Assembly: GCA_964035545.1 (NCBI GenBank)
Contig: OZ037772.1
Location: 12,956,818 to 13,020,817, forward strand
DNA: 64,000 nucleotides
Reading direction: 5' to 3'
Origin: Bugula neritina
Lineage: Eukaryota; Animalia; Bryozoa
Part shown: positions 13,501 to 52,528 of the stretch, piece by piece
Numbering within the stretch: position 1 is the stretch's first letter
Layout of the letters: each line of letters starts with the position of its first letter
Translations under genes and position numbers: made by a program
Notes under the pieces: model-generated
What the model saw: only the letters and a program-made list of their open reading frames with translations
Told to the model about the DNA's origin: nothing
Databases searched by the model: none

Positions 13501-16500
13501 CTGTGAGAGTAAGTATTCAACTAATTCAGTTTCAGTCATATAATATGGTAAAATGTAATACAATATAATATAATGTAAAATTATACATAATTTACTTTAA
13601 TGAATGTTACTTTATGACATAATATATTATAACAAGATATAAAATGATATATTATAAAATGATACAATATATTACGTATAGTAATACACAGTATAGTAAT
13701 ATACAGTATAGTAATACACAGTATAGTAATATACAGTATAGTAATACGCAGTATAGTATACACAGTATAGTAATACACAGTACAGTAATACACAGTACAG
13801 TAATACACAGTATAGTAATACACAGTATAGTAATACACAGTATAGTAATATACAGTATAGTAATACGCAGTATAGTAATACGCAGTATAGTAATACACAG
13901 TATAGTAATACGCAGTATAGTATACACAGTATAGTAATATACAGTATAGTAATACGCAGTATAGTAATACACAGTATAGTAATACACAGTACAGTAATAC
14001 ACAGTACAGTAATACACAGTACAGTAATACACAGTACAGTAATACACAGTATAGTAATACACAGTATAGTAATACACAGTATAGTAATACACGGTACAGT
14101 AATACACAGTATAGTATACACAGTATAGTATATAATACACAGTATAGTAATACACAGTATAGTAATACGCAGTATAGTAACACGCAGTATAGTAATACAC
14201 AGTATAGTAATACACAGTATAGTAGTACACAGTATAGTAATACACAGTATAGTATACACAGTATAGTAATACACAGTATAGTAATACACAGTATAGTATA
14301 TAATACACAGTATAGTAATACACAGTATAGTAATACGCAGTATAGTAACACGCAGTATAGTAACACACAGTATAGTAATACACAGTATAGTGATACACAG
14401 TATATAGTAATACACAGTATAGTAGTACACAGTATAGTATACGCAGTATAGTAACACACAGTATAGTAACACACAGTATATAGTAATACACAGTATAGTA
14501 ATACACAGTATAGTAGTACACAGTATAGTAATACACAGTATAGTAATACACAGTATAGTAACACACAGTATAGTAACACACAGTATAGTAATACACAGTA
14601 TAGTGATACACAGTATATAGTAATACACAGTATAGTAGTACACAGTATAGTATACGCAGTATAGTAACACACAGTATAGTAACACACAGTATATAGTAAT
14701 ACACAGTATAGTAATACACAGTATAGTTTATACAGTATAGTAATACACAGTATAGTAATACACAGTATAGTAATACACAGTATAGTAATACACAGTATAG
14801 TATACACAGTATAGTAATACACAGTATAGTAATACACAGTATAGTAATACACAGTATATAGTAATACACAGTATAGTATACACAGTATAGTAATACACAG
14901 TATAGTAATACACAGTATATAGTATACACAGTATAGTAACACACAGTATAGTAACACACAGTATAGTAATACACAGTATATAGTAATACACAGTATATAG
15001 TAATACACAGTATAGTAATACACAGTATAGTAATACACAGTATAGTAATACACAGTATAGTAATACACAGTATAGTATACACAGTATAGTAATACACAGT
15101 ATAGTATACACAGTATAGCATATACAGTATAGTAGTACACAGTATAGTAATACACAGTATAGTAATACACAGTATAGTAATACACAGTATAGTATACACA
15201 GTATAGTAATACACAGTATAGTAATACACAGTACAGTAATACACAGTATAGTAATACACAGTATAGTAATACACAGTATAGTAATATACAGTATAGTAAT
15301 ACACAGTATAGTAATACACAGTATAGTAATACACAGTGTAGTATACACAGTATAGTAATACACAGTATAGTAATACACAGTATAGTATACACAGTATAGT
15401 AACACACAGTATAGTAATACACAGTATAGTAATACACAGTATATAGTAATACACAGTATATAGTAATACACAGTATAGTAATACACAGTATAGTAATACA
15501 CAGTATAGTAATACACAGTATAGTAATACACAGTATAGTATACACAGTATAGTAATACACAGTATAGTATACACAGTATAGTATATACAGTATAGTAGTA
15601 CACAGTATAGTAATACACAGTATAGTAATACACAGTATAGTAATACACAGTATAGTATACACAGTATAGTAATACACAGTATAGTAATACACAGTACAGT
15701 AATACACAGTATAGTAATACACAGTATAGTAATACACAGTATAGTAATATACAGTATAGTAATACACAGTATAGTAATACACAGTATAGTAATACACAGT
15801 GTAGTATACACAGTATAGTAATACACAGTATAGTAATACACAGTATAGTATATACAGTATAGTAACACACAGTATAGTAATACACAGTATAGTAATACAC
15901 AGTATAGTATATACAGTATAGTAATACACAGTATAGTAATACACAGTATAGTAATACACAGTATAGTAATACACAGTATAGTATATACAGTATAGTAACA
16001 CACAGTATAGTAATACACAGTATAGTAATACACAGTATAGTATACACAGTATAGTAATACACAGTATAGTAATACACAGTATAGTAATACACAGTATAGT
16101 AATACACAGTATAGTAATACACAGTATAGTAATACACAGTATAGTAATACACAGTATAGTAATACACAGTATAGTAATACACAGTATAGTATACACAGTA
16201 TAGTAATACACAGTATAGTAATACACAGTACAGTAATACACAGTATAGTAATACACAGTATAGTAATACACAGTATAGTAATATACAGTATAGTAATACA
16301 CAGTATAGTAATACACAGTGTAGTAATACAGTATATAGTAATACACAGTATAGTAATACACAGTATAGTAATATACAGTATAGTAATATACAGTATAGTA
16401 ACACACAGTATAGTAATACACAGTATAGTAATACACAGTATAGTATATACAGTATAGTAACACACAGTATAGTAATACACAGTATAGTAATACACAGTAT

Positions 16501-18398
16501 AGTATACACAGTATAGTAACACACAGTATAGTAATACACAGTATAGTATATACAGTATAGTAATACACAGTATAGTAATACACAGTATAGTAATACACAG
16601 TATAGTAATACACAGTATAGTAATACACAGTATAGTAATACACAGTATAGTATATACAGTATAGTAATACACAGTATAGTAATACACAGTATAGTAATAC
16701 ACAGTATAGTAATACACAGTATAGTAATACACAGTATAGTAATACACAGTATAGTAATACACAGTATAGTAATACACAGTATAGTATACACAGTATAGTA
16801 ACACACAGTATAGTTATACACAGTATATAGTAATACACAGTATAGTAATACACAGTATAGTAATACACAGTATAGTATACACAGTATAGTAATACACAGT
16901 ATAGTAATACACAGTACAGTAATACACAGTACTTCCTGTCAACTGCAGATATAGATGAGTGTGCAGATTCCTCTCTCAACTTCTGTCACAACGACTCTGT
17001 GTGTATCGACAACACCGGGAGCTACTCATGCAGGTGTAAGCCTGGGTTCCAGGGCAATGGATTCAACTGCTCAGGTAAACCAGAACTCATACTAACTTCT
17101 TGTAGCAGTGCCAAGTCACCGTGTGAGTGTGACTGCTGCCGGTATATGCTGCCGGTATATGCTGCCGGTATATGCTGCCGGTATATGCTATAGTATTACG
17201 TGATGAGCTGCCAGGGATTACTCATATATTACTTAGTAATTGTCTGCTCTGCTTCAGATATTGATGAGTGTGCAGACGACTCCGAGAGTCCGTGTGACGT
17301 CAGAGCTAGCTGCGTAAACACACCCGGTAGCTTCCATTGTGACTGTAACCACGGCTACACAGGAAATGGGACGTGGTGCACAGACATTGACGAGTGCCGG
17401 GAGCTGCTAGACGACTGTGACCCTAATTATGGTGTCTGCACCAACACCGATGGCGGCCATTTGTGTACCTGTATCCGTGGTTACACTGGAGAATTCAACT
17501 GCACAGGCTCGTATTCTATCTGCTGCTCGTCAAATTATAATTTTAAAAATATTTCAATTTATGAACAATTGTCTTATTTTATGACAACTCCCTTTGACTC
17601 TGCAGAGGTTGGGCCAAGTAAGGGTGTACTGAAGGAGCAGGAGAAATATCTGGTGGACTCGGCAGCGCTGTTTGAGATGTACGCCTTAGAGGCTGAGAGA
17701 CAGTCCCTAGATACACAGCATGAGAATCTGTTGAGGAAGTGTGCTCTGGTTGCTAGGAAACCAACTAGAGGGAAGAGAGCGGTACGTGTCACTTCCTGTT
17801 ACCTGTAACTACGTGTCACTTCCTGTTACTACTAAGTAGGAGTTTGTGTACTTGTAGACTGTGTTCTATACATACCATATATTATACTGTAGACTGTGTT
17901 CTATACATACCATATATCATACTGTAGACTGTGTTCTATACATACCATATATCATACTGTAGACTGTGTTCTATACATACCATATGTTATACTGTAGACT
18001 GTGTTCTATACATACCATATATTATACTGTAGACTGTGTTCTATACATACCATATATCATACAGTAGACTGTGTTCTATACATACCATATATCATACAGT
18101 AGACTGAGTTCTATACATACCATATATCATACTGTGGACTGTGTTCTATACATACCATATATTATAGCCTACTGTAGATTGTGTTCTATACATACCATAT
18201 ATTATACTGTAGACTGTGTTCTACCAATGAGCATCAACTGAAAGTTGATCACCTACTATAACCTACTTTTAGATTATATCTGGGTCAAAGGTCACCATAG
18301 ACAGGAAACACGTGGCTATCCTATCTCAAGCGATCAAAGTTGCTATCAGAAAGCTTAAGGCTGATGTGGCAGCAACCAAAATAGCTTGTGGACTCTAG
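6897..18398 (+). CDS. Hemicentin/VWA7-type VWA domain + beta-sandwich region + 7 EGF-like (6 cbEGF) + furin-site C-terminal module; about 845 aa, probably secreted
   Basis: Exons 6897-7049, 7606-7699, 7892-7962, 8108-8266, 8683-8805, 9178-9430, 9577-9714, 9813-9899, 10515-10693, 10966-11041, 11976-12122, 12593-12715, 12973-13107, 13386-13508, 16949-17074, 17258-17506, 17606-17781, 18273-18398 sum to 2538 nt in frame. Motifs SLVFVFDTTGSM (MIDAS DxTxS), LVPFNDP, GGGDCPEMAIGGI, IYVFTDA and VTFVMTGDCG are typical of the hemicentin-1 N-terminal VWA domain. Likely 5' UTR exon donor at 6459/6460. Confidence 0.88.
7087..7375. repeat. 14-bp minisatellite TGCTGGTCA(T/C)GTGA, about 20 copies
   Basis: Visible tandem array in the first coding intron of the VWA gene. 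Confidence 0.95.
9893..10402 (+). repeat. 23-27-bp tandem repeat TTCTG|GTAAGTCTCT(CT)nAGACTCAG built from the exon 8 donor junction, about 20 copies
   Basis: The unit starts with the last exon bases (TTCTG) plus the real donor GTAAGT at 9900. Confidence 0.95.
10422..10510. repeat. (TA)n microsatellite abutting a splice acceptor
   Basis: About 45 TA units, then CCAG|GC at 10511-10516. Confidence 0.98.
11037..11193 (+). repeat. 24-bp donor-junction tandem repeat TACAG|GTAGGCGTGTCTTATCACG
   Basis: About 6.5 copies, starting at the real donor 11041/11042. Confidence 0.95.
13678..16931. repeat. 3.25-kb intronic satellite, 15-bp unit CAGTATAGTAATACA with 13- and 17-bp variants
   Basis: Visible array filling the intron between EGF exons 13386-13508 and 16949-17074. 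Confidence 0.98.
17852..18223. repeat. 35-bp minisatellite ACTGTAGACTGTGTTCTATACATACCATATATTAT, about 10 copies
   Basis: Visible array in the last intron of the VWA gene. Confidence 0.95.
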
Positions 18399-28396: not shown

Positions 28397-31300
28397 GGCA
28401 GGACTCTGATTTTCCACTTGATTGGCCATATCTTGAAAAATAATAGCCCTACTGACCTCAAATTTTGATATGTTCCTAACCATGGGCCTACCCACACCCC
28501 CCCACAATTTCAGAGGTCAAGGTTAAATTATAGCGATTTTGGCCGGAGTGCACTAAAGAGTTATCTCCTCCTAGAATAATATTTCAATTCTGCTCCAACT
28601 CCACAATTTGAAGCAAAACATATTTATCTAGAACCCCTACCACATTTAGCCTTCTAGGTTTACTAGATAACAAGATCTATGCACTTTTCGCCGGAGTTCT
28701 AGATTTTTAGCAGGTACCATGTATTGAGATGACCATATCTTGAAACCTATTACATGCACATGCCCAATTCTGGTAGGGTTGCTAGATATACATTTAAGCA
28801 TATTATGTTCCAAATTTCATATGGGTAGGTCAAAAATTGTAGGAGGAGATAGAATTTTACTATCGTAGCAACCGAAAAAACATACAAATGAGAAAATTGA
28901 GGACGAAAATTCAATAAATTGAAATGACTATATCTTGAAACCTACAAGTTAAATATATATTATTTTGGCATGGTTGTTAGAAGCACATCTCATCATACTA
29001 TACTCCAAATTTCATAAAAATAGCATAAAACCTATAGGAGAAGCAATAATTTTACTACTGTAACAACCGAAAATACACAAATAAAAAATTCAATGACGAA
29101 AAATTTATCAATCGATATGATCTCATTTCAAAATCTTAGTTGTATTTGCATGATTTCAAAAGAAATTACAGAATAAATTATAAATTCAGTGAAGTTCTAT
29201 CTCCAGAAAACTCCAGTCTTGTAATACTTTGGCCAGACTGCTGGGCTTTGTGGCGGGAACTCACTATTATTAGAAGATCTTTTTGTGGGTATAAATGGCA
29301 AACTGCTTCACAATCAGTGTTCCTAAAACAAAGTAAACAGGTACAAAATCAGTACTATTATCATTGAATTATACGACAGAACAGCTGACAACAAAAATAA
29401 ACTTAGGTTTTTGCAAAATTTTCACTTTGGGGGCGAAGTAACAAAGTTAACTTATCTTCAAAGTTGAGGGTTTATTGAAATTTCATCTCTAAAAAGCTCC
29501 AGCTTGGTAGTCACTCCGGTCAGGTCGTCTGGCTATTGTTGCTCTTTGATAGGTGGCCCGTCTCTTGGAAGCCTTTATTCTCTGCAGATCTTTTTTGTGG
29601 GTGTGCATTACCAGCTGTTTTCCAATCGTTATTCCTAAAATATCATAAACAGCAGCAAGAGCAGTACTACCATCATTGAATTGTAAGACAGCACAGTTGA
29701 CAGCAAGTTCTAACCTAGGTTTCTGCACAAACTGCACTTTAGGGCAAAGTAACCAAATTATCCTATGAAAAGACTCGTTATTATTTTGTGTACCCCCATG
29801 CAAGCATTTTGAAAGCAGAGAATCGGCTGTAAGAGCTTCAAAAACCGGTTTTATCTCTTCTAGTACAAAAGGTGGGAGACTATTCGAATTACCATCACCA
29901 CTACCATTTACTGCCGGGCAAGAATTATCACATGAGCTATGATTCCTATTCCTATGATGCCATATTCTCCAAATGCTTGCTTTCATACCCTCTAAGTTTC
30001 CTACATTATTCCTAATAGCTGCTCCATAATGACCCTGAATTCTCTTTATAGCAGCTTTATGCAACTTACCACTACCTCCTATACCTTTATACTTACGGCC
30101 TTCCCAATAAAACTCTTTTCCCTTACATTGCTGCACTTTATCTAATAAAAGCTTGCCCATTCGCTTTTGCACATGACCTACGCATTCAAGTTTCTCAACA
30201 ACAACATCTGGGCCATAGGGTTGGGCCTTACTTACAGCACTATAAGACTTGGAGTCTCCATCCCCTAAATATTTTACAAACCGTACTCCTCTCTTTTCGA
30301 CTGACCTCCTGAAAATTCTAACCATACCTACCGGCTCCATACCACCAGCTGAACCCTCATGATTTTTGACACAACTATGCTCTGGTGGTATACTATCTTT
30401 ATGACTGGCACATGTAAAACAATAACTAGAGAGAACTTCAGTATCAACTACTTTACCTGGTTTTCCTACTGAATGGGTAATAACAGTAGCTACCCCATTC
30501 TTACTACTAAAGCCCCTACGCTGCCAGGTACCATCACAAGATACTGTTATATCACTACTGTTACTCATACTAGCAGCTTCCCTGGCAGCCTGGTCCATTG
30601 ACTTACTAGCTAGCTCCTTAGTAATGTTACCAAGTCGCTCTACATCCTTGGCCCACTCACTAAAAGCGACAGGTGGGGGCAAACCTAGATGAGCAGAAAT
30701 AGTTGCAGCAGTACTTCTATGCCCACCTGCCAAGGTTGTACCAAAAGCCAACCGAGTATTCAAAGAAAACCTATGATCTACATCACGATCACTCATTACA
30801 CTACTTTCAATAAGAACACCACAAACAGAACAGGTAAAATCAAAAGCTGGTACAATTCCACTATGGCATTTTACACTAATTCGCAAGGACATAGCAGGGT
30901 GATCTTTACAAGCAATACTACCAGATGACAACCTACCCATAAGTTCTAAAACTAACTTAGTCTGCACTATAATACTGTCAGGCTGAGAATTTGCAGAACT
31001 AAATAAGAAATTTGAAGTACTTAGCTGATCATTTAGTTTAGCAGAGCTGGCAGTTGCAGCAGGAGTAGTGCCGGTAACTGTAGGTGTAGCATCACTAGTC
31101 AGACTCAAAGAGCTGGAGGCAGTCGGTGGTATAAGTTGATGGTCAGATGCAGCAGACTGGGGCTCCAATTGAAAGTCCATAGTACTAACTGAAAAGCTTG
31201 TAGATGCACTTAGATGTGCAGTAGAGTTAGTTACATTAGTGTTACTAATAGTAGTAGCGATAACTGGCGTAGCGGTGCCGGCAATAGTAGTAGTAGTAGT

Positions 31301-32196
31301 AGTAATCGTCATGGGTGGTCTAGTAGTAGGCGTAGTTGTGGGCGTCGTTGCACTTGCAGTTGCAGGCGTCGTAGCACTTGCAGGCGTCGTAGTAGTAGTA
31401 CTAGTAGTAATATCTAGTACTGGGTCAGCTTTTCTGTACTGATTTCCTCGAAACTGCCTTTTTTTAACCTTAGGCATGTTTACTGTGTCTGTAGTATACG
31501 TGCTGCTATGTTAGAGACTTATATAACGAGTCGGTACGAATATAAATATTATGTAATATTACTAATGTCAAAATAAGTAAATCACGGCACTTCGTAAAAC
31601 AAAATGTTGATAAATATAAAGTCAAATATGTCTTCTCTTTATTTTCACCGGTTGTAGAAGATCTAGATGAAGGATTGATGGTAAATTATCAGATTGTTTT
31701 GGCAGTTTGGAATATTGCGTGTAGCTTCTTTGTTCGTTTTGGCAAACAGGATGTGCGTCACAGATCACGCGATAAGCACAGCCAATAAATGAAGTGAATC
31801 GCGGGTCACGGGGTCAGGGTAATAAAATCCGACAAAACTATGCTAAATCAATTATCTTTGTTTTGCCTCAATGCGCTTACTGAGAGGTGTTATACACTGC
31901 CCATTAGTAAAGTAGGCTTTTCTGAAACTAATGCTGTACAGTACAACTGAGAATGCCGAGTTGAAAACAGTTAACAATGGTGCTAAAGTTAGTGATTATG
32001 GCTGCATTTTTTTTGTTTTTCACACCAGTTGCAACAAAGGGGTAACTTTAAATACACAATTTTAATAGAAAGAAAAGTAGAATATCAAAAAGAATCACAT
32101 CACTCGAATCTGGAAATTTTAGAGTTTTTATGCATAGTAAAATCCAAATATGGCCAAATTGACCACAATTTCTTAATTTTTAATCATAGTCCTGCC
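28397..32196 (-). mobile_element. Full-length DNA transposon of Kolobok type (TTAA target duplication, GG...CC termini), 3.8 kb
   Basis: TTAA (28393-28396) + GGCAGGACTCTGATT ... AATCATAGTCCTGCC + TTAA (32197-32200), i.e. a 15-bp TIR with one mismatch. A subterminal TTGGCCATAT motif is present at both ends in inverted orientation. Encloses an intact DDE transposase ORF. Confidence 0.85.
29489..31477 (-). CDS. DDE transposase, 662 aa, of the family with DGTW/GDGD/TQNxNE motifs (often annotated Mutator-like; Kolobok-type by termini)
   Basis: Uninterrupted ORF with SCDGTWQRRGFSSKNG, YLGDGDSK, KLECVGHVQKR and HGGTQNNNES motifs, Cys/His clusters, an N-terminal basic NLS-like stretch and a Thr-rich spacer. 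Confidence 0.92.
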   Translation of the reverse strand: MPKVKKRQFRGNQYRKADPVLDITTSTTTTTPASATTPATASATTPTTTPTTRPPMTITTTTTTIAGTATPVIATTISNTNVTNSTAHLSASTSFSVSTMDFQLEPQSAASDHQLIPPTASSSLSLTSDATPTVTGTTPAATASSAKLNDQLSTSNFLFSSANSQPDSIIVQTKLVLELMGRLSSGSIACKDHPAMSLRISVKCHSGIVPAFDFTCSVCGVLIESSVMSDRDVDHRFSLNTRLAFGTTLAGGHRSTAATISAHLGLPPPVAFSEWAKDVERLGNITKELASKSMDQAAREAASMSNSSDITVSCDGTWQRRGFSSKNGVATVITHSVGKPGKVVDTEVLSSYCFTCASHKDSIPPEHSCVKNHEGSAGGMEPVGMVRIFRRSVEKRGVRFVKYLGDGDSKSYSAVSKAQPYGPDVVVEKLECVGHVQKRMGKLLLDKVQQCKGKEFYWEGRKYKGIGGSGKLHKAAIKRIQGHYGAAIRNNVGNLEGMKASIWRIWHHRNRNHSSCDNSCPAVNGSGDGNSNSLPPFVLEEIKPVFEALTADSLLSKCLHGGTQNNNESFHRIIWLLCPKVQFVQKPRLELAVNCAVLQFNDGSTALAAVYDILGITIGKQLVMHTHKKDLQRIKASKRRATYQRATIARRPDRSDYQAGAF

Positions 32197-38586: not shown

Positions 38587-39678
38587 ATCTCAGACTACAT
38601 AGCAAAATGAATACAATATAATACAATACGATGTTCTCCATTTACTGTGCAACTCAAAAGGTGGAGTTCTGTTCCAAGACATAGAACTTGAGTCAACTTT
38701 GAATAAGAAATGATAAAACTAGTGCATTCTCTTTGTATAAGGCTATTGATAATCTCGGACATCAGCTAAATGTATTTCCACACTCAGGTCAAGGGCGGAT
38801 TACATGTGATTAATTACGTAGTACATGATAGCCGATGAGGTTATATTATTAGAATGACAACTCCTGGTAAAATATTTTATTCTTACAAACCGTATGAATC
38901 TAAGAACCAAATAGTTTTTATTTATATCAATCTTATGATTTTTAAAAGCTATACATTATTTGTATTATTTAGCCAGACCTTTGTTGTCATGAGTTGAAGT
39001 AATATATAGTAATATATATGAGTATATTGACGTGATGTAACATGGTTATTCCCTTACAGTCTGCATGTACTCAAAATGCACTAAGAGTAAATACTAGTTT
39101 CCTATTTAATTGTCTTTGTAGAGAAATCATAGAAATAAAAAATTAAAACTATATTTCTATACCTATGTATTAATATTATAACATTCCTACTACCTTAACC
39201 AAGGTGACAAGTTCTAAAAGCAATATATTTCAGTATAATGTCATAACAATGTATATAATAATAATATAATATACACATATTATGTATACTGGTATGATAT
39301 CTGCAGTTTGCATGTATATATTGATATAATGTTATAAAAATATAATATTATATAGTATGCAACTATAATATAATATATAGAATGTAACTATACTAATATA
39401 ATATAGTACATAGAATGTAACTATAATATAATACAATATATACAATGTACCTATAATATAATATAATATATAGAATGTACCGGTAACTATAATATAATAT
39501 AATACAATATATACAATTTTATAGCTGCACTTTGTTCATGAAAGTCTCAAGTAATCAAATCAGAAGTTGCATCAAACAGTCAGCCCTCGCATTCTTCACT
39601 AATATTTGAAATTCTTTCCTCAATGAAGTTAATAATATTAAGTTAGACTAAGTTTCTAGTACATAAAATTATAGCAAT

Positions 39679-40860
39679 ATGGCTGGTTCCATTAGAGCTC
39701 TGCATGAAACACTCTGTGAATTAGTGAGCTCCAAGAAGATAGCTATTAGGGGAATTGGAGCAAACCAAAAAGGAAAAATAGTATTCTATTTATTTGACAA
39801 TGACAGCTGCGCTGTGAAAGGTATGATTGAGCACAACTACCATGAGAACCAGATGGAACTATATGACAACTTCTCCAGGTGCCTGCTCGTTGGCCGGGGA
39901 CATCCCAACCCCACAGCTGAAGTCTCCTTCTCCGTGTATTTACCAACCAGAGTAGGCGTGATGCAGATTGCAAATGGGGACCAAAGCAAGTTCTGTCTCT
40001 ACATGGCAAACAACACAGGTGCGGAAATTAATTTCCGTGACTGCTCATCTGAGGAGAAATCCTACAACTTGGCGGTACTAAACTCGGAGGACAACTCCCT
40101 TCTGATATTTGTGAACCGCTACTTCTCTCTTGTCAACGTTCAATACCAGTTTTGCCGCTGCCCTCTGATTAGAGTCCTCAGTATCTTCCTTGCCGTGCAG
40201 TTGTTGCAGAAGAAGAGTTACACCTGCATAGAGGGCCTGCCGTATCAGATCCTGAGTGAGGTGGGGCCTCAGAATCCCTTCCCACTAGCCTTTGACATTC
40301 TGGCTACAATCAACAGGTATATACTCATGGTGGCTGTCCAAACGGCCGACCACGGCGGCAGCAAGTATCTTTACTTGATCACTAAACAAAACAACATCCA
40401 GAATGTTGTTTTGGTCTGTCGGATTGTAAATCTGGAAGCTGGCCCCAGCATGTACATCGAAGATCAATACGGTAGAGAGGGATTCCGCTGTGACTCGGTG
40501 CGAGGGGAGCACGTCTCCCAGCTAGTCATCAGAGCATCTCAAACTGAGCAACACATAGGAACAGTGGAGACAAATAAGTTGGATGGACTCATCACAGGGA
40601 CCTCCATTACTGATGGCCACTGCTTTCAGCTGTTGCCTTTTCAGACTGGCTATAGAATACAAAGCAACAGTGGTGAAATTGTGGGCAGCCACTGCAAAAT
40701 AGGCTCATTCTTCCAAATCAGGTACTCTATGGATAAATATGTCCCACTATATCACCGCCTGGTCACACTCATCATGAGCTGGCTCAACTTCTCTGCATCA
40801 TATAAAATGATGGAAGAAAAAGTTCCTTTGGTAAAGATGCATAAATACTCCTCATTATGA
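39679..40860 (+). CDS. Intronless 393-aa protein, probably two tandem divergent scramblase/Tubby-C/LURP-one-like domains (paralog A)
   Basis: Long non-repetitive ORF, more GC-rich than its flanks, colinear with 41463-42641. The second half follows the phospholipid scramblase pattern (MYIEDQYGRE, QLVIRAS...HIGTV, YRIQSNSGEIVG, FQIRYSMD..., terminal hydrophobic helix). Family call is by eye only. Confidence 0.8.
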   Translation: MAGSIRALHETLCELVSSKKIAIRGIGANQKGKIVFYLFDNDSCAVKGMIEHNYHENQMELYDNFSRCLLVGRGHPNPTAEVSFSVYLPTRVGVMQIANGDQSKFCLYMANNTGAEINFRDCSSEEKSYNLAVLNSEDNSLLIFVNRYFSLVNVQYQFCRCPLIRVLSIFLAVQLLQKKSYTCIEGLPYQILSEVGPQNPFPLAFDILATINRYILMVAVQTADHGGSKYLYLITKQNNIQNVVLVCRIVNLEAGPSMYIEDQYGREGFRCDSVRGEHVSQLVIRASQTEQHIGTVETNKLDGLITGTSITDGHCFQLLPFQTGYRIQSNSGEIVGSHCKIGSFFQIRYSMDKYVPLYHRLVTLIMSWLNFSASYKMMEEKVPLVKMHKYSSL

Positions 40861-41462
40861 GTTATTTTTGTTAATCCACCAGTCAAGTCTTGATCAAACT
40901 GATTTATCTATGAAGTGCTGCAATAAATGTACTAACAGCATAAACAGCATATTACTTTCCTCTGATGAAAACAACAATCTACAAGTTTCATTGAGAAATA
41001 AGAGACATTTCTATCAGTTTACTAATTCCCTGTTGATCGGTGAGGTTTGTTTTGAGTTGCTAACCGGGCAGGCGTCTCTCTATTACTACATCTTTATTAG
41101 AGTTATATTCCAAACCTTTAACATGACAACTTTGTGTTTACTCTCTCTATATAAACATGTTGTATATCTGTTAGTTATAATATGCACTGGTTATAGTACA
41201 AGTGTGGTAATGGTAATGTCATGTATAAGGATATCATTTATTCTCCAGGAATGAGAGGTTGACAATTAGCTTTTGCTGTTTCAGATAATAAAATGACCCC
41301 ATGTGCTGTAAGACATGTTTATAATTAAAAAGCATAATTTTGCTATAAATATACTTTTATTCAATTCATTTACCTAAAATAGTTATAAGAAATGAAAAGG
41401 TTATAATTATAGATTTGCTTGTGATAAAACTAATGAAGATGCTTTGAATTGCAAATTGAAGA

Positions 41463-42641
41463 TTAGACTTTGGTTGAGTAAAGATGTTTCTTGATAAGAG
41501 GAAGGGGCTCATCCAGAATGTTGTGGAAGTCTCTAAGCAGTGTGTAACACATTAGCAGTATCACTGTTCTCTCACTGTGCGATGCGTCCACATTATCTGA
41601 CAGGAAACGTATCTTCCACCGGTTAAATGACTGAGCCAAGACGGCTACTTCTTTGTTTTGGCTTGAGACGATCCGATAAGTCTTTCCTGCCGGAGCAACA
41701 GCTGTAAATCTACTGCCGTCATCAGTGGTACCAGTTAATGTTTTAAATGGCTCAGCTGTATGCACAGAGCCAAGGCATTTGTGCGTCCCGGACAGCTTAA
41801 TGATGAGCTGAGATACCTCGTCATTTTTCTCGCTGTCACAATAAAACATTTCCTCTCCCACAGTGTTGCTGAAGAGCAGAAGAGTGTTGCACCTACTATC
41901 ATTCATAAGCCTGCAAACTAGAAGCAAATCCTGTGACCGGTCCGCGTAAAAGTAAACATATTTGTCGCCATAGTTCTCGTGTGTCGTCACAGTTAACATG
42001 ATGTTGAGCAGCCGTGTCGTTGTCAGCGTATCCAGAGCCGACGGCATAACTCCAACTTTTTTCTCGCTTAGAATATGTGGCATATGCCATCTTGACGCCA
42101 ACTTTGTATTTTTATCCCATAACTGCATCGCATAAAACAGCATCAATACTTGCAGAAAAGGTTCCACTGAGCCTTTAGCCTCACAAGTCATATTTACATT
42201 CAAGTGACTTTGTCTGATAAATATTTTTATGGTAGATTTAGAGAAAGTTAACTCAGTTAGTCCACGTCTAGGATAGGCGGTTTTAAATACTATTTTCTCT
42301 GATGACGGACTCGACGAACCAACAAATATACAGTCATCTTGTATGGAAGCGATGGCCCGAGACCCACAGTTTGTATTGATAGATACTGTGAACACAGTCT
42401 TTTTCTCGGGCCCAAATAACTGAGTGGCAGAGAGCAAGAGCCTGGCATTGTTATCGTATAACTTCATATCCCTACCCTTCACATCACACTCCATCATGCC
42501 TTTCACCTGTCCCGTGCCATAGTCGTATACATAGAAGACCACTGAACCCTTGCAGTTGACCCCAAAGCTGCGTATAGATATTCCCTGGGAGCCACAGCTC
42601 ACCAGATCGGTGAGAATTTGGTGTGCTGTCTGAGCAGCCAT
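41463..42641 (-). CDS. Intronless 392-aa protein, paralog B of 39679-40860 (tandem scramblase/Tubby-C-like)
   Basis: Shared blocks with paralog A: GxNxKGxxVFYxxD, VKGM, MxLYDNxxRxLL, ILSE, HxxxxKY.Y, LVCR, GxExFxCDS, VSQLxI, YRIxS, PLxKxHxYS. Confidence 0.8.
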   Translation of the reverse strand: MAAQTAHQILTDLVSCGSQGISIRSFGVNCKGSVVFYVYDYGTGQVKGMMECDVKGRDMKLYDNNARLLLSATQLFGPEKKTVFTVSINTNCGSRAIASIQDDCIFVGSSSPSSEKIVFKTAYPRRGLTELTFSKSTIKIFIRQSHLNVNMTCEAKGSVEPFLQVLMLFYAMQLWDKNTKLASRWHMPHILSEKKVGVMPSALDTLTTTRLLNIMLTVTTHENYGDKYVYFYADRSQDLLLVCRLMNDSRCNTLLLFSNTVGEEMFYCDSEKNDEVSQLIIKLSGTHKCLGSVHTAEPFKTLTGTTDDGSRFTAVAPAGKTYRIVSSQNKEVAVLAQSFNRWKIRFLSDNVDASHSERTVILLMCYTLLRDFHNILDEPLPLIKKHLYSTKV

Positions 42642-42969
42642 TCTAATGTACCAGACACGAGTAGCTCTTTACTCCACAACAGTCAGCATAACATGCATTC
42701 CTTTAGCATTCCTTCAACATGCCACATTCTTACAGTTAGAATTTCAGTTCCACAGTCTATTTCCTCCTATATTATAATTTATGTTATTTAAAACCCTGGG
42801 ATTATTTAAACTTGTAAACAGACTATTTGAAAGACTGTGCTTTATATTTCTTTCACAAGTAAAAAGAAATTTTAGTCATATTTGTTATTACAAAATAGTT
42901 AGTTTAATCCTTCACCGAGAACAGCTTCTACCAGCCTACGGGTCATTGGCTTGTACGTTCTACTAGAAA

Positions 42970-43220
42970 GATAACTTCAGTTACTAAAGCTACTATGGTT
43001 ACTAAGGTTACTTTTTTTACCAAAGTTATTAAGGTTACTACAGTTACCATGGTTACCGTGGTAACTATGGTTACTAAGGCTACTGTGGTTACCAAGGTTA
43101 CTTTGTTTACCAAAGTTACTAGGATTACTAAGGCTACTGTGGTTATCGTGGTTACCATTGTTACTATGGTTACTAAGGTTAACGTTGTTACTGTTGTTAC
43201 TGTGGTTACTAAGGCAACAT
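42970..43220. repeat. Degenerate 9-bp GTTAC(C/T)NNN low-complexity array
   Basis: Visible GTTACT/GTTACC periodicity; produces spurious V/T-rich ORFs on both strands. Confidence 0.85.
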
Positions 43221-43435: not shown

Positions 43436-46400
43436 TTAGGTAACTTTGGGCCTTTTGCTTTTAGAGCCTTTCTTCTCCGGAGATACCGGAGAGTCTTGTG
43501 TCGGTTTTGTCTTGCTTCTGTTGGTGTCAGTTGACTGGGCAGACTTCCTCTTGTGAATTGACTGCGAGACTACAGCGATACTTCCTGTTTTCTGGCGGGT
43601 AGTGTTGGCAGTCTGCAAAATAGTAAGACGATTAAATGACACATTCTAAGTTGATTGTATGTGTACTCAGTAGTTAGTATAACACAGCAGCATAACATAA
43701 GATATCAATATAAGTTCTAATATAATACATAACAGTATATCATATATTATAATATAAAACAATAACATAATAAAACAATAAAATATAACATAAGCCCACC
43801 ACTTGTCCGATGAGACTGGCTTGACCTCTAGGAGTAGACTCTGCTTCACCAACACTAACTCGAGCTGACTTCCACGTCTCCTGGTATTCCGGAATAATCT
43901 GTGGGACATCTGGACGATAGTCGTCTGCTCTCGTAATAACACCAAACTTGTGTTTATAGTAAGACTAAGTAGTGTCTGTATACTCTCTTCATATACTAGT
44001 GTGAGTACTAGTAGTTTATGTTACTAGTAGTTTATATTACTAGTAGTTTATATTACTAGTAGTATATATTACTAGTAGTATATTACTAATAGTTTATATT
44101 ACTAATATTATATGACTAGTTGTATATTACTAGGGAGGTTTTACCGGCTTTGAACTTTTTCCAGATGACGTAGAGACGATAGGCCTGCAGCAGAATCACG
44201 AGTCCATTCTTAGAGGCGAAGAACATGTTAGTGTAGGTAATGATCCTGTAACCTACGAGAGAAGAACATATTAGTGTAGGTAATGATCCTGTAACCTACG
44301 AGAGAAGAACATATTATATGTAGAGTATATTACAGAGTATATGACAGAGTATATGACAGAGTATATTACAGAGTATATTACTGAGTATATTACAGAGTAT
44401 ATTACAGAGTATATTCTCACCGACAATGGAGATGAGGCGCACCGTAATAAACGGGATGTCCTGAAGCACCAACTCGATCACAGCAGCCGTGACATCCTGA
44501 AATAGACCGGAAACTTCTGACTAACACAATTACTTGAGATGTTGACATACTAACAGACTATATACCTGCAGGTGTTATCTGATAGACTATAGCATATTAT
44601 ATTCTCTTCCCTATAGACTGAACTATTGCTATGGTGTACAACAGCTTCAAGTCTTCAACACAATATTGTTTATAGTATTCTACAAGTAACTACAGAGTCC
44701 TACTGACACAAATAGGTGATGCTACATTACAGTTGGTAGGTAAAGATAACGAAGGAATTGTCCCCTCACCCTGTGAGTGACAAAAGCGACAATGTTGTGA
44801 ACATTGCGGGCTCTCTTGGTAACCCCGACAGAAGTGAAGATGAGAACAAACTGGAGCAGACTGATGGTGTAAGCTAACAGCGTGCCGTACACCAATTCTG
44901 TCTGCTCGAGGATTGCCTTCTCCTTGAATATCTCCAGCACTTCGAGGATATCTGAGGCGTAGGCCAGATAGACAAACAGGATCTGCGGGGAAGATGGAAA
45001 ACACTTGGTACTCTGACAAACGTTAGACTAGGTATATGATTATATTACAACTATCAAATAGAAACATTGGTGTAGTCGGGATTTAATTGGTAATATCAAA
45101 AGCTGTATTATTCACAGAATCTAAAACAAAACTTCCAAAACTAATCTGGGAGAAAATACCGACAGCGATGTAAGAGTTGTATGACTAAAACCGGTGCTTT
45201 CGACTAAACAATTCAACAGGAAACATAGAAAACGTGGAAACATTTTTAAAAAATACCCGAATATTTACATTTAGTTGTTAAAATCTCATCAGTTTACGGC
45301 AACAACGTGTATATTATACACTAGAATATAATATTTATTATATGATAGAATATATTATAAATTATATGATAGAATATTTTTTACGCTGGAATTTCATAAA
45401 AGAAGCAGAAGGAATGCAGTGTGTATCAATTAAAGTAATGTGATACATATAATATTATATGATTTAAAAAAGTTAATGTAATATTAGTTTACACAAAGTT
45501 GAATACCTGAGAGACCTGCTCATGACTGAGGTCACCCTTAGGCAGCAGCCATCTGCCAAATATCAGCAGCACCATCAGGGACTGCTCCACGCCGTTCACC
45601 CACTCGTTAGACGAATACGTGATCTTCTGCGGCCTCAACTGCAGCAGACAGTGTAATACCGTATAAGTAATACTGTATAAGTAATACTGTATAAGTAATG
45701 CTGTATAAGTAATACTGTGTAAGTAATACCGTATAAGTAATACCGTATAAGTAATACCGTATAAGTAATACCATATAAGTAATACCGTATAAGTAATACT
45801 GTATAAGTAATGCTGTATAAGTAATACTGTGTAAGTAATACCGTATAAGTAATACCGTATAAGTAATATCGTATAAGTAATACCGTATAAGTAATACCGT
45901 ATAAGTAATACCGTATAAGTAATACCATACAAGTAATACCGTATAAGTAATATTGTATAAGAAATACTGTATAAAGAAACAGGAAACACACACCCCGGGA
46001 ATGTCAATATTCGTGATCTGTGTATCCGTCACATCCTGTGACTGCTCTTTAGCTAGAATGTCGAGTTTGTTGAGCTCCAAGTACCAGATGCAGGGCACCA
46101 CACTCAGCAGGTAAAACAGGAAAGACGGGCAGTACCTACAACCCCCGTAATCAGTCTACAGTCTCAGTCTACAATCTCAGACTATGCTACTAGTCGCTAC
46201 TAATTGATGTCTTACCACAACTTCCACTCCGCCCCGTGTCTCTTTATCATCACGTACACGACCTCAATAATCAGAGGGATGAGGGTACAGCCCAGGGCCC
46301 AGTAGATGTCATTCTCATATATCACAGTCACTCTCCACACGGCTATCCCAGCGTGAACTGAAAATAATATGTTCAGAGTAGTGAGTGTAATTTCTACTCC

Positions 46401-47845: not shown

Positions 47846-50800
47846 TAATAGACTCTATACTATTCTACTTGTAATATACTCTATACTATTCTACTTGTAA
47901 TATACTCTATACTATTCTACTTGTAATATACTCTCTACTATTCTACTTGTAATATACTCTATACTATTCTACTTGTAATATACTCTATACTATTCTACTT
48001 GTAATATACTCTATACTATTCTACTTCTAATATACTCTATACTATTCTACTTGTAATATACTCTATACTATTCTACTTGTAATATACTCTATACTATTCT
48101 ACTTGTAATATACTCTATACTATTCTACTTGTAATATACTCTCTACTATTCTACTTGTAATATACTCTATACTATTCTACTTGTAATATACTCTCTACTA
48201 TTCTACTTGTAATATACTCTATACTATTCTACTTGTAATATACTCTATACTATTCTACTTGTAATATACTCTATACTATTCTACTTGTAATATACTCTAT
48301 ACTATTCTACTTGTAATATACTCTATACTATTCTACTTGTAATATACTCTATACTATTCTACTTGTAATATACTCTATACTATTCTACTTGTAATATACT
48401 CTATACTATTCTACTTGTAATATACTCTATACTATTCTACTTGTAATATACTCTATACTATTCTACTTGTAATATACTCTATACTATTCTACTTGTAATA
48501 TACTCTATACTATTCTACTTGTAATATACTCTATACTATTCTACTTGTAATATACTCTATACTATTCTACTTGTAATATACTCTATACTATTCTACTTGT
48601 AATATACTCTATACTATTCTACTTGTAATATACTCTATACTATTCTACTTGTAATATACTCTATACTATTCTACTTGTAATATACTCTATACTATTCTAC
48701 TTGTAATATACTCTATACTATTCTACTTGTAATATACTCTATACTATTCTACTTGTAATATACTCTATACTATTCTACTTATAATATACTCTATACTATT
48801 CTACTTGTAATATACTCTATACTATTCTACTTGTAATATACTCTATACTATTCTACTTGTAATATACTCTATACTATTCTACTTGTAATATACTCTATAC
48901 TATTCTACTTGTAATATACTCTATACTATTCTACTTGTAATATACTCTATACTATTCTACTTGTAATATACTCTATACTATTCTACTTGTAATATACTCT
49001 ATACTATTCTACTTGTAATATACTCTATACTATTCTACTTGTAATATACTCTATACTATTCTACTTGTAATATACTCTATACTATTCTACTTGTAATATA
49101 CTCTATACTATTCTACTTGTAATATACTCTATACTATTCTACTTGTAATATACTCTATACTATTCTACTTGTAATATACTCTATACTATTCTACTTGTAA
49201 TATACTCTATACTATTCTACTTGTAATATACTCTATACTATTCTACTTGTAATATACTCTATACTATTCTACTTGTAATATACTCTATACTATTCTACTT
49301 GTAATATACTCTATACTATTCTACTTGTAATATACTCTATACTATTCTACTTGTAATATACTCTATACTATTCTACTTGTAATATACTCTATACTATTCT
49401 ACTTGTAATATACTCTATACTATTCTACTTGTAATATACTCTATACTATTCTACTTGTAATATACTCTATACTATTCTACTTGTAATATACTCTATACTA
49501 TTCTACTTGTAATATACTCTATACTATTCTACTTGTAATATACTCTATACTATTCTACTTGTAATATACTCTATACTATTCTACTTGTAATATACTCTAT
49601 ACTATTCTACTTGTAATATACTCTATACTATTCTACTTATAATATACTCTATACTATTCTACTTGTAATATACTCTATACTATTCTACTTGTAATATACT
49701 CTATACTATTCTACTTGTAATATACTCTATACTATTCTACTTGTAATATACTCTATACTATTCTACTTGTAATATACTCTATACTATTCTACTTGTAATA
49801 TACTCTATACTATTCTACTTGTAATATACTCTATACTATTCTACTTGTAATATACTCTATACTATTCTACTTGTAATATACTCTATACTATTCTACTTAT
49901 AATATACTCTATACTATTCTACTTGTAATATACTCTATACTATTCTACTTGTAATATACTCTATACTATTCTACTTGTAATATACTCTATACTATTCTAC
50001 TTGTAATATACTCTATACTATTCTACTTGTAATATACTCTATACTATTCTACTTGTAATATACTCTATACTATTCTACTTGTAATATACTCTATACTATT
50101 CTACTTGTAATATACTCTATACTATTCTACTTGTAATAGACTCTATACTATTCTACTTGTAATATACTCTATACTATTCTACTTGTAATAGACTCTATAC
50201 TATTCTACTTGTAATATACTCTATACTATTCTACTTGTAATATACTCTATACTATTCTACTTGTAATATACTCTATACTATTCTACTTGTAATATACTCT
50301 ATACTATTCTACTTGTAATATACTCTATACTATTCTACTTGTAATATACTCTATACTATTCTACTTGTAATATACTCTATACTATTCTACTTGTAATATA
50401 CTCTATACTATTCTACTTGTAATATACTCTATACTATTCTACTTGTAATATACTCTATACTATTCTACTTGTAATATACTCTATACTATTCTACTTGTAA
50501 TATACTCTATACTATTCTACTTGTAATATACTCTATACTATTCTACTTGTAATATACTCTATACTATTCTACTTCTAATATACTCTATACTATTCTACTT
50601 GTAATATACTCTATACTATTCTACTTGTAATATACTCTATACTATTCTACTTGTAATAGACTCTATACTATTCTACTTGTAATATACTCTATACTATTCT
50701 ACTTGTAATATACTCTATACTATTCTACTTGTAATATACTCTATACTATTCTACTTGTAATATACTCTATACTATTCTACTTGTAATATACTCTATACTA

Positions 50801-52528
50801 TTCTACTTGTAATATACTCTATACTATTCTACTTGTAATATACTCTATACTATTCTACTTGTAATATACTCTATACTATTCTACTTGTAATATACTCTAT
50901 ACTATTCTACTTGTAATATACTCTATACTATTCTACTTGTAATATACTCTATACTATTCTACTTGTAATATACTCTATACTATTCTACTTGTAATATACT
51001 CTATACTATTCTACTTGTAATATACTCTATACTATTCTACTTGTAATATACTCTATACTATTCTACTTGTAATATACTCTATACTATTCTACTTGTAATA
51101 TACTCTATACTATTCTACTTGTAATATACTCTATACTATTCTACTTGTAATATACTCTATACTATTCTACTTGTAATATACTCTATACTATTCTACTTGT
51201 AATATACTCTATACTATTCTACTTGTAATATACTCTATACTATTCTACTTCTAATATACTCTATACTATTCTACTTGTAATATACTCTATACTATTCTAC
51301 TTGTAATATACTCTATACTATTCTACTTGTAATATACTCTATACTATTCTACTTGTAATATACTCTATACTATTCTACTTGTAATATACTCTATACTATT
51401 CTACTTGTAATATACTCTATACTATTCTACTTGTAATATACTCTATACTATTCTACTTGTAATATACTCTATACTATTCTACTTGTAATATACTCTATAC
51501 TATTCTACTTGTAATATACTCTATACTATTCTACTTGTAATATACTCTATACTATTCTACTTGTAATATACTCTCTACTATTCTACTTGTAATATACTCT
51601 ATACTATTCTACTTGTAATATACTCTATACTATTCTACTTGTAATATACTCTATACTATTCTACTTGTAATATACTCTATACTATTCTACTTGTAATATA
51701 CTCTATACTATTCTACTTGTAATATACTCTATACTATTCTACTTGTAATATACTCTATACTATTCTACTTGTAATATACTCTATACTATTCTACTTGTAA
51801 TATACTCTATACTATTCTACTTGTAATATACTCTATACTATTCTACTTGTAATAGACTCTATACTATTCTACTTGTAATATACTCTATACTATTCTACTT
51901 GTAATATACTCTATACTATTCTACTTGTAATATACTCTATACTATTCTACTTGTAATATACTCTATACTATTCTACTTGTAATATACTCTATACTATTCT
52001 ACTTGTAATATACTCTATACTATTCTACTTGTAATATACTCTATACTATTCTACTTGTAATATACTCTATACTATTCTACTTGTAATATACTCTATACTA
52101 TTCTACTTGTAATAGACTCTATACTATTCTACTTGTAATATACTCTATACTATTCTACTTGTAATATACTCTATACTATTCTACTTGTAATATACTCTCT
52201 ACTATTCTACTGGTAATATACTCTATACTATTCTACTTGTAATATACTCTATACTATTCTACTTGTAATATACTCTATACTATTCTACTTGTAATATACT
52301 CTCTACTATTCTACTGGTAATATACTCTATACTATTCTACTTGTAATATACTCTATACTATTCTACTTGTAATATACTCTATACTATTCTACTTGTAATA
52401 TACTCTATACTATTCTACTTGTAATATACTCTATACTATTCTACTTGTAATATACTCTATACTATTCTACTTGTAATATACTCTATACTATTCTACTTGT
52501 AATATACTCTATACTATTCTACTTGTAA
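47846..52528. repeat. 4.7-kb highly homogeneous 26-bp satellite ATACTATTCTACTTGTAATATACTCT, about 180 copies
   Basis: Visible array with only sporadic single-base variants. Confidence 0.99.

Follow-up and report, generated by a model that had tools for sequence, protein, structure and literature searches.

A convergent pair of old single-coding-exon paralogs in Bugula neritina with a predicted Tubby/LURP-one/scramblase-type barrel

The stretch of Bugula neritina DNA analysed in this work (64,000 nucleotides of contig OZ037772.1, in the following referred to as the window) contains two convergent genes, A and B, for proteins that an earlier note on the same sequence had described as a double scramblase/Tubby-C-like family. 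Gene A (39679..40860, plus strand) and gene B (41463..42641, minus strand) are ATG-to-stop open reading frames (ORFs) of 393 and 392 amino acids plus stop, respectively, each with a single-exon coding sequence (CDS). They face each other tail to tail on opposite strands, and their stop codons are separated by a spacer of 602 bp (40861..41462) that presumably accommodates both 3' untranslated regions (UTRs). In BLASTP, the two products align over their full length with 31% identity and 51% positives (E 3e-41), and A and B are therefore considered to be old paralogs. The open frames around them measure 397 and 401 amino acids, respectively, with an upstream stop just a few codons before the Met-Ala start shared by both proteins; an upstream coding exon would thus find no room, such that each CDS comprises a single exon. 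The neighbours of the pair, on the other hand, are multi-exon genes. TMEM26 is present in at least seven pieces on the minus strand (window ~44176-46370, identified with the Pfam TMEM26 model), and a BiP/HSP70 gene at 56-58 kb of the window is also in pieces. The coordinates and orientation of the two ORFs, their end-to-end but strongly diverged alignment and the lack of coding introns amid intron-rich neighbours had all been described correctly in the earlier note. Single-exon coding is nothing special in this organism, since the canonical Tubby domain of the genome also resides in one open frame. The local gene order is TMEM26 (minus), B (minus) and then A (plus) facing B. Nesting of the pair within an intron of TMEM26 was considered and rejected, because all TMEM26 pieces fall into the interval given above, upstream of B.

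Word-based protein searches yielded one ortholog for each gene, P0001 with 88% identity to A and P0002 with 86% identity to B, both from a related species that is represented by sequence data of five Logan runs and of two JGI metagenomes; the cluster members of these ortholog sequences differ by just 1-3 residues. The convergent layout of the two genes recurs on a contig of this sister species (L003), which is collinear with positions 39533-43047 of the window at 88% nucleotide identity. On two JGI contigs (L155 and L156) the collinear region continues as far as position 44513 and into the 3' end of TMEM26, with the arrangement TMEM26 -> B -> <- A being kept. Both frames are intact in the sister species with zero indels across 2.36 kb of CDS, whereas the 602-bp spacer has experienced 9 indel events, with a divergence (K = 0.163) close to that of synonymous sites. 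Nei-Gojobori estimates of non-synonymous (dN) and synonymous (dS) divergence between the two species, with significance assessed by Fisher test, amount to dN 0.058 and dS 0.235 for A (dN/dS 0.25, p 3e-11) and to dN 0.068 and dS 0.155 for B (dN/dS 0.44, p 2e-4). Purifying selection, which the earlier note had named as a point on which its proposal could be refuted, is thus present in both genes. In A, the ratio is 0.12 for the N-terminal half, where residues 98-161 form the most constrained part of the protein (0.06), and 0.41 for the predicted C-terminal barrel described below. The corresponding values for the two halves of B are 0.40 and 0.87, and the tail of B shows 0 replacement versus 4 silent changes. 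Because the frames are intact, the CDS is free of indels and replacements are in deficit next to a spacer with 9 indel events, A and B are, judging from their pattern of substitution, functional protein-coding genes. Amino-acid divergence is ~70% between A and B versus ~12-14% between the two species, and the family is therefore much older than the species pair.

A Pfam scan of A and B (E <= 10) returned nothing relevant, the Tub, Scramblase, LOR and Tubby_C_like models remaining silent. An exhaustive HMMER search of 1.84 billion cluster representatives with a four-sequence profile found only P0001 and P0002; it was performed with no length window, such that single-domain relatives were covered. 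In a scan of JGI metagenome contigs no relatives of A/B were detected. Within the 216-Mb genome, a protein search, the full-length profile and each of the half-profiles agree on two copies, A and B alone, and nothing credible emerged as a further paralog in genome-wide searches with full-length and half-domain profiles at E <= 10. A kinship with the FERM-F3 domain of MYLIP/IDOL was also rejected: phmmer gave E 0.017 for residues 184-277, the family profile E 0.26-0.88, and with the full-length profile the match was gone. It is taken as a chance similarity because the signal first faded and then vanished when profiles were used. The A/B family appears to be lineage-restricted and diverged past sequence recognition from all else that has been sampled, and the proposal that it matches no described family by sequence holds in the Pfam, word-based and exhaustive profile searches, which give orthologs alone. 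Bryozoans are poorly sampled in public libraries, and the term orphan is used here for a family with no sequence-detectable relative beyond one sister species; it does not imply absence from other bryozoans.

The C-terminal half is the part for which structure prediction offers an assignment. The region concerned spans residues 199-382 of A (40273..40824, plus strand) and residues ~198-381 of B (41499..42050, minus strand), the latter being assigned by alignment to A alone and not by a fold model of its own. A single-sequence AlphaFold2 model was uninformative, with a predicted local distance difference test score (pLDDT) of 35. When ten sequences from the two paralogs and the two species were supplied, which is still a very shallow alignment, the overall mean pLDDT was 47.7 and the predicted template modelling score (pTM) 0.45. 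In this model the C-terminal half of A (pLDDT 55-83) consists of a short helix (residues 202-210), 12 beta-strands (215-349), the first seven of which start at 215/229/240/257/269/279/292, and a C-terminal core helix (356-375). The Tubby C-terminal-like superfamily is defined by a closed 12-stranded beta-barrel surrounding a hydrophobic C-terminal alpha-helix at its centre (PMC2639001), and the modelled half of A has this architecture of a 12-stranded barrel enclosing a C-terminal helix. Foldseek assigned probabilities of 0.99-1.00 to the structures 1zxu, 1s31, 2fim and 3c5n, with E-values of just 3e-3 to 3e-2. Of the 162 residues in At5g01750, 145 can be aligned with the model at 3.1 A. Generic 12-stranded membrane barrels, which do not contain a helix, trail the two best structural matches by more than 4 Z units. 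A shape search of the ESM Atlas led to LURP-one-related (LOR) and Scramblase clusters (template modelling scores of 0.55-0.71, normalised by target). In a search with language-model features, A and B alike had LOR, Tubby-C-like and Scramblase clusters as their closest neighbours; LOR/Tubby-C-like clusters account for 26 of the 30 named matches of B, the best score being 0.90. The basic residues K229, R248, R326 and R360 are invariant in this half. Taken at the level of the model, the C-terminal half very probably belongs to the Tubby/scramblase/LOR fold, and it is filed at fold or superfamily level only, because no sequence-based test supports the link. The scramblase/Tubby-C-like identity put forward in the earlier note is upheld in so far as AlphaFold2 and Foldseek predict a barrel with a C-terminal helix in this half, but finds no support in sequence comparison.

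The N-terminal domain of A (residues 1-190; 39679..40248, plus strand) is conserved and beta-rich. AlphaFold2 placed a helix at residues 3-17, at least seven strands within 21-97, an unmodelled stretch at 98-161 and a hydrophobic helix at 162-178; the pLDDT is below 50 across residues 76-204, and matches of the N-terminal half in the fold search with this model are weak. The claim that each protein is composed of two similar halves did not survive as a statement about sequence. An internal repeat was rejected at this level, with an hhalign probability of 0.06% in the profile-profile comparison of the two halves and with a profile Smith-Waterman score below that of shuffled controls (z = -0.9), no diagonal offset standing out. 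The motif pairs quoted in support of the claim are not above chance as sequence similarity; their predicted positions in the AlphaFold2 model do correspond between the halves, on strands 4 and 5 and on the terminal helix.

The predicted elements nevertheless bear the possibility of a tandem double barrel, in which the N-terminal half would be a second, degenerate Tubby-like 12-stranded barrel that is closed by helix 162-178 and derives from an ancient internal duplication. The elements of the N-terminal half repeat those of the C-terminal half at a near-constant offset of 194-201 residues: both halves begin with a helix, the N-terminal strands start at 21/34/46/58/68/84/93 and can be paired with the seven C-terminal strand starts listed above, and helix 162-178 takes the place of helix 356-375. 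The resulting units are of near-equal length (about 176 and 174 amino acids). Furthermore, the unmodelled stretch 98-161 tends to beta structure and contains four to five segments of strand-like character, which would raise the count to ~12; the Chou-Fasman scan is too crude for counting strands, since it detects just 6 of the 12 modelled strands in the C-terminal half. The stretch is under strong constraint in A (dN/dS 0.06-0.12), which argues that it is folded. The helix at 158-176 has a Kyte-Doolittle value of 1.78 in A and of about 1.0 in B and, being hydrophobic in A and not in B, it is better explained as a buried core helix than as a membrane span. On the other side stand the lack of similarity between the halves by sequence, the fact that the same alignment gave AlphaFold2 a barrel for the C-terminal half and none for the N-terminal half, and a probability of 0.3% for the N-terminal profile against LOR domains. 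The double barrel is accordingly a serious contender, if in our estimate not quite the probable one.

Beyond the core helix, A ends in a tail (residues 376-393; 40804..40857, plus strand) that is modelled as flexible (pLDDT 21-41). Both paralogs have the pattern E..PL.K.H.YS in common, with E380, P383, L384, K386, H388, Y390 and S391 as invariant columns. The endings ...YSSL and ...STKV, to which the earlier note had drawn attention, are indeed read in A and B; the final residues are SSL in A, SPL in its ortholog and TKV in B and its ortholog, that is [S/T]-x-[L/V]. All four sequences have the [S/T]-x-hydrophobic end, a class I PDZ-binding pattern that is short and common by chance, even though the paralogs are offset here by an indel of one residue. 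The conserved C-terminal linear motif as such is real, and a role of the tail as a PDZ ligand is put forward as a hypothesis. A larger construction, a bryozoan-confined tandem of two helix-filled barrels with the paralogs acting together and engaging scaffolds via their [S/T]-x-hydrophobic tails, is regarded as rather unlikely. A literature search did not find any tandem Tubby or scramblase architecture in the superfamily.

Taken together, A and B are likely to be an old duplicate pair of functional single-coding-exon genes for peripheral-membrane adaptors with a barrel in the C-terminal half, a beta-rich N-terminal domain and a conserved tail. A signal peptide was found in neither protein, a transmembrane segment conserved between the paralogs is lacking, and B does not contain any hydrophobic helix strong enough to span a membrane. 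Since signal peptide and paralog-conserved transmembrane segment are both missing, the proteins are probably cytosolic. The ~175 C-terminal residues would form a closed 12-stranded barrel wrapped around a hydrophobic C-terminal helix, the ~190 N-terminal residues would constitute a second, more strongly conserved beta-rich domain, and the short conserved tail would protrude beyond the core helix. By analogy with the superfamily, the barrel would most likely attach the protein, in a reversible manner, to the cytoplasmic side of a membrane or bind a lipid head group, while the N-terminal domain and the tail would recruit partner proteins. In such a role the proteins would be adaptors at the membrane periphery and neither enzymes nor true lipid translocases.

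Several observations weigh against this picture and bear on a different explanation, namely that the Tubby-like barrel is a modelling artefact and that A and B are beta-rich orphans of another or a new fold for which the networks default to the nearest familiar barrel. The fold assignment derives from one AlphaFold2 model of moderate confidence computed from a very shallow alignment, with the pLDDT and pTM values given above, and the single-sequence model was uninformative at a pLDDT of 35. The language-model scores are at or below the 0.9 reliability line of the tool, the Foldseek E-values are weak, and the recognition values in the Atlas (1847-1894) are below the level that is reached by 91% of known-family proteins. 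Sequence-based tests are negative throughout: the four Pfam models are silent on A and B, profile searches of the PDB with A/B profiles came back empty, and in hhalign a profile built from 17 bacterial LOR domains gave probabilities of 1.1% for the C-terminal half and 0.3% for the N-terminal half; with a query profile as shallow as this one (Neff about 1.6), such tests have little power. On the other hand, the model shows the full unusual topology, 12 strands with a helix threaded through the barrel, and matches At5g01750 over most of its length; generic 12-stranded membrane barrels without a helix are left behind by more than 4 Z units, and two networks (AlphaFold2 and ESM features) as well as two paralogs agree. 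An artefact is therefore considered improbable. A further point concerns the predicted function. The barrel of B has a near-neutral dN/dS of 0.87 between the species, for which relaxed or diversifying selection is a better explanation than the conservation of a lipid pocket.

The same substitution pattern would also suit a reading in which A and B are not housekeeping membrane adaptors but fast-evolving defence or recognition factors with the barrel surface as the variable, target-binding part. The barrel evolves faster than the N-terminal half in A (0.41 vs 0.12) and nearly neutrally in B, and the family is lineage-restricted and duplicated. Defence roles have also been reported for LOR genes in plants and for PLSCR1 in vertebrates (PMC10264818, PMC12003403). 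However, with two species and a few dozen substitutions a dN/dS of 0.87 is indistinguishable from relaxed constraint, and the family has not expanded past two copies. A role in recognition or defence could be accommodated by so rapidly evolving a barrel, above all by that of B; we hold such a role to be about as improbable as the artefact. That the ORFs are non-functional, that is retroposed or transposon-derived pseudogenes open by chance, is hardly credible: single-exon coding amid an intron-rich neighbourhood and a Mutator-like transposase ORF 8 kb away would suit this explanation, but each 1.18-kb frame has stayed open in both species, free of indels and with a significant deficit of replacements, and the pair is syntenic, limited to two copies, not bounded by terminal inverted repeats and devoid of a parent gene. 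Retroposition, which the earlier note had entertained, is unsupported in a genome that contains neither an intron-bearing parent nor any other copy, and a mobile element was excluded on the grounds of missing terminal inverted repeats, a copy number of two and synteny with the sister species.

Besides the coding sequences, the locus offers some features of its own. The spacer contains AATAAA signals at 40922 and 41287 on the plus strand and, as the complement for the minus strand, at 41093, 41237 and 41356; given this placement within 40861-41462, the 3' UTRs of A and B could overlap by ~50-200 nt, and the signals of both strands are retained in the sister species. No Rfam family of non-coding RNA was matched at the locus, the spacer included. 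The 146 nt 5' of the ATG of A (39533-39678) differ between species with K = 0.058 vs 0.235 at synonymous sites, and a GTACAT motif is located 10-20 nt upstream of the ATG of A and of B in both species (within 39533-39678 and 42642-42700); motif and conserved upstream stretch could represent a core promoter element or else the acceptor site of an intron within the 5' UTR. Two tandem-repeat tracts, an AATAT-rich 30-mer array and ~25 copies of the 9-mer GTTACTATG, are located at 39339-39511 and 42980-43211. They are found a short distance upstream of the 5' ends of A and B, and the contigs of the sister species break or repeat at the same places. Within the TMEM26 region, the 14-mer GTAATACCGTATAA is repeated 23 times at 45653-45974, adjoining an exon that matches Pfam positions 121-160. 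Further away, positions 29489-31477 on the minus strand, ~8 kb from the pair, encode an intact ORF of 662 amino acids in which a Mutator-like transposase domain is present at full length (PF20700, E 2e-59); the ORF may belong to an active or recently active Mutator-like element (MULE). A 4-kb tract at 48001-52000 with a GC content of 0.23 and a GC skew of -0.66 to -0.68 is probably a strand-biased simple repeat, and the region 13581-16979, in which minus-strand ORFs of 337 to 1132 amino acids are open in more than one frame (GC 0.28, AT skew +0.26), looks like a low-complexity repeat and not like a gene.

Among the described families, the LURP-one-related proteins (DUF567, PF04525; At5g01750, 1zxu, 2q4m) come closest. 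They share with the model of A the same compact domain of ~170 amino acids and the 12-stranded barrel around a C-terminal helix, and theirs are the clusters nearest to A/B by language-model features and Atlas shape, whereas hidden Markov model (HMM) matches and profile-profile signals are lacking. LOR proteins consist of a single domain and are known from plants, fungi, bacteria and archaea (PMC2639001); PF04525 did not match anywhere in the B. neritina genome. In A and B, by contrast, the predicted barrel is preceded by a conserved N-terminal domain of ~190 amino acids and followed by a conserved C-terminal tail. Tubby/TULP proteins (PF01167; 1i7e, 1s31, 2fim, 3c5n) resemble A and B in carrying the domain at the C-terminal end, behind another region, but theirs comprises ~250 amino acids with longer loops, and the Tub HMM does not match A/B. 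On the Tubby barrel, basic residues form a pocket that binds phosphoinositides. Scramblases share the superfamily fold (PMC2639001), and PLSCR1-5 (PF03803) resemble A/B in a C-terminal helix so hydrophobic that it may be taken for a transmembrane segment by mistake; Scramblase clusters of the Atlas are among the neighbours of A/B in shape and features. Here, too, an HMM match is missing, and A and B lack the Cys-rich palmitoylation motif, as had been recognised before, the only C-x-C being at residue 159 of A and missing in B. The N-terminus of A/B opens with a helix, after which strands follow; the Pro-rich character of the scramblase N-terminus is missing. While the N-terminal region of Tubby proteins and scramblases is natively unfolded (PMC2639001), that of A/B is a constrained, beta-rich domain. 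The bacterial Tubby_C_like family (PF23728) and the beta-flower families (PF21784-PF21786) belong to the same Pfam clan and form helix-filled or flower-like barrels, with a circularly permuted first strand in the beta-flowers (10.1101/2023.03.14.532539). A Tubby_C_like cluster is found among the feature neighbours of B; these families differ from A/B in that their HMMs do not match and in that they are bacterial, with many lipoproteins.

The genome possesses a canonical Tubby gene on contig C1 (324 bits with the Tub model), and a whole-genome scan with PF03803, in which the A/B locus was unmatched, located ordinary scramblase genes with several exons at three or more loci (on C3, C7 and C9). 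A and B thus form a further branch that has diverged strongly, and they do not represent the counterpart of a known gene in this species. From the described member families the pair differs in the absence of any HMM match, in its structured N-terminal domain, in the lack of palmitoylation and Pro-rich regions and in its conserved tail. As a side result of the same scans, Tubby-domain matches with in-frame TAG/TAA were encountered on the small contigs C44, C110, C168 and C314, and a scramblase-domain match of the same kind on C228, which is consistent with ciliate contigs with a reassigned code inside the animal assembly.

With its predicted barrel, the pair represents a new and very divergent offshoot of a protein fold that is already known, rather than a system of a new kind. 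The Tubby/scramblase/LURP-one superfamily is small and its biochemistry is disputed, with lipid scrambling, phosphoinositide tethering and action as transcription factor under debate. A third animal branch would provide an independent data point on the uses to which the helix-filled barrel is put, and this would be a branch that is invisible to every sequence model, in which a structured partner domain replaces the usual disordered N-terminus and which carries a conserved tail. It would also illustrate that orphan genes of poorly sampled phyla may be assigned to old folds via structure prediction alone. If the N-terminal half is not a second barrel, A and B would be an ordinary divergent lineage-specific family without known function; if it is, they would have an architecture that we have not found described for this superfamily.

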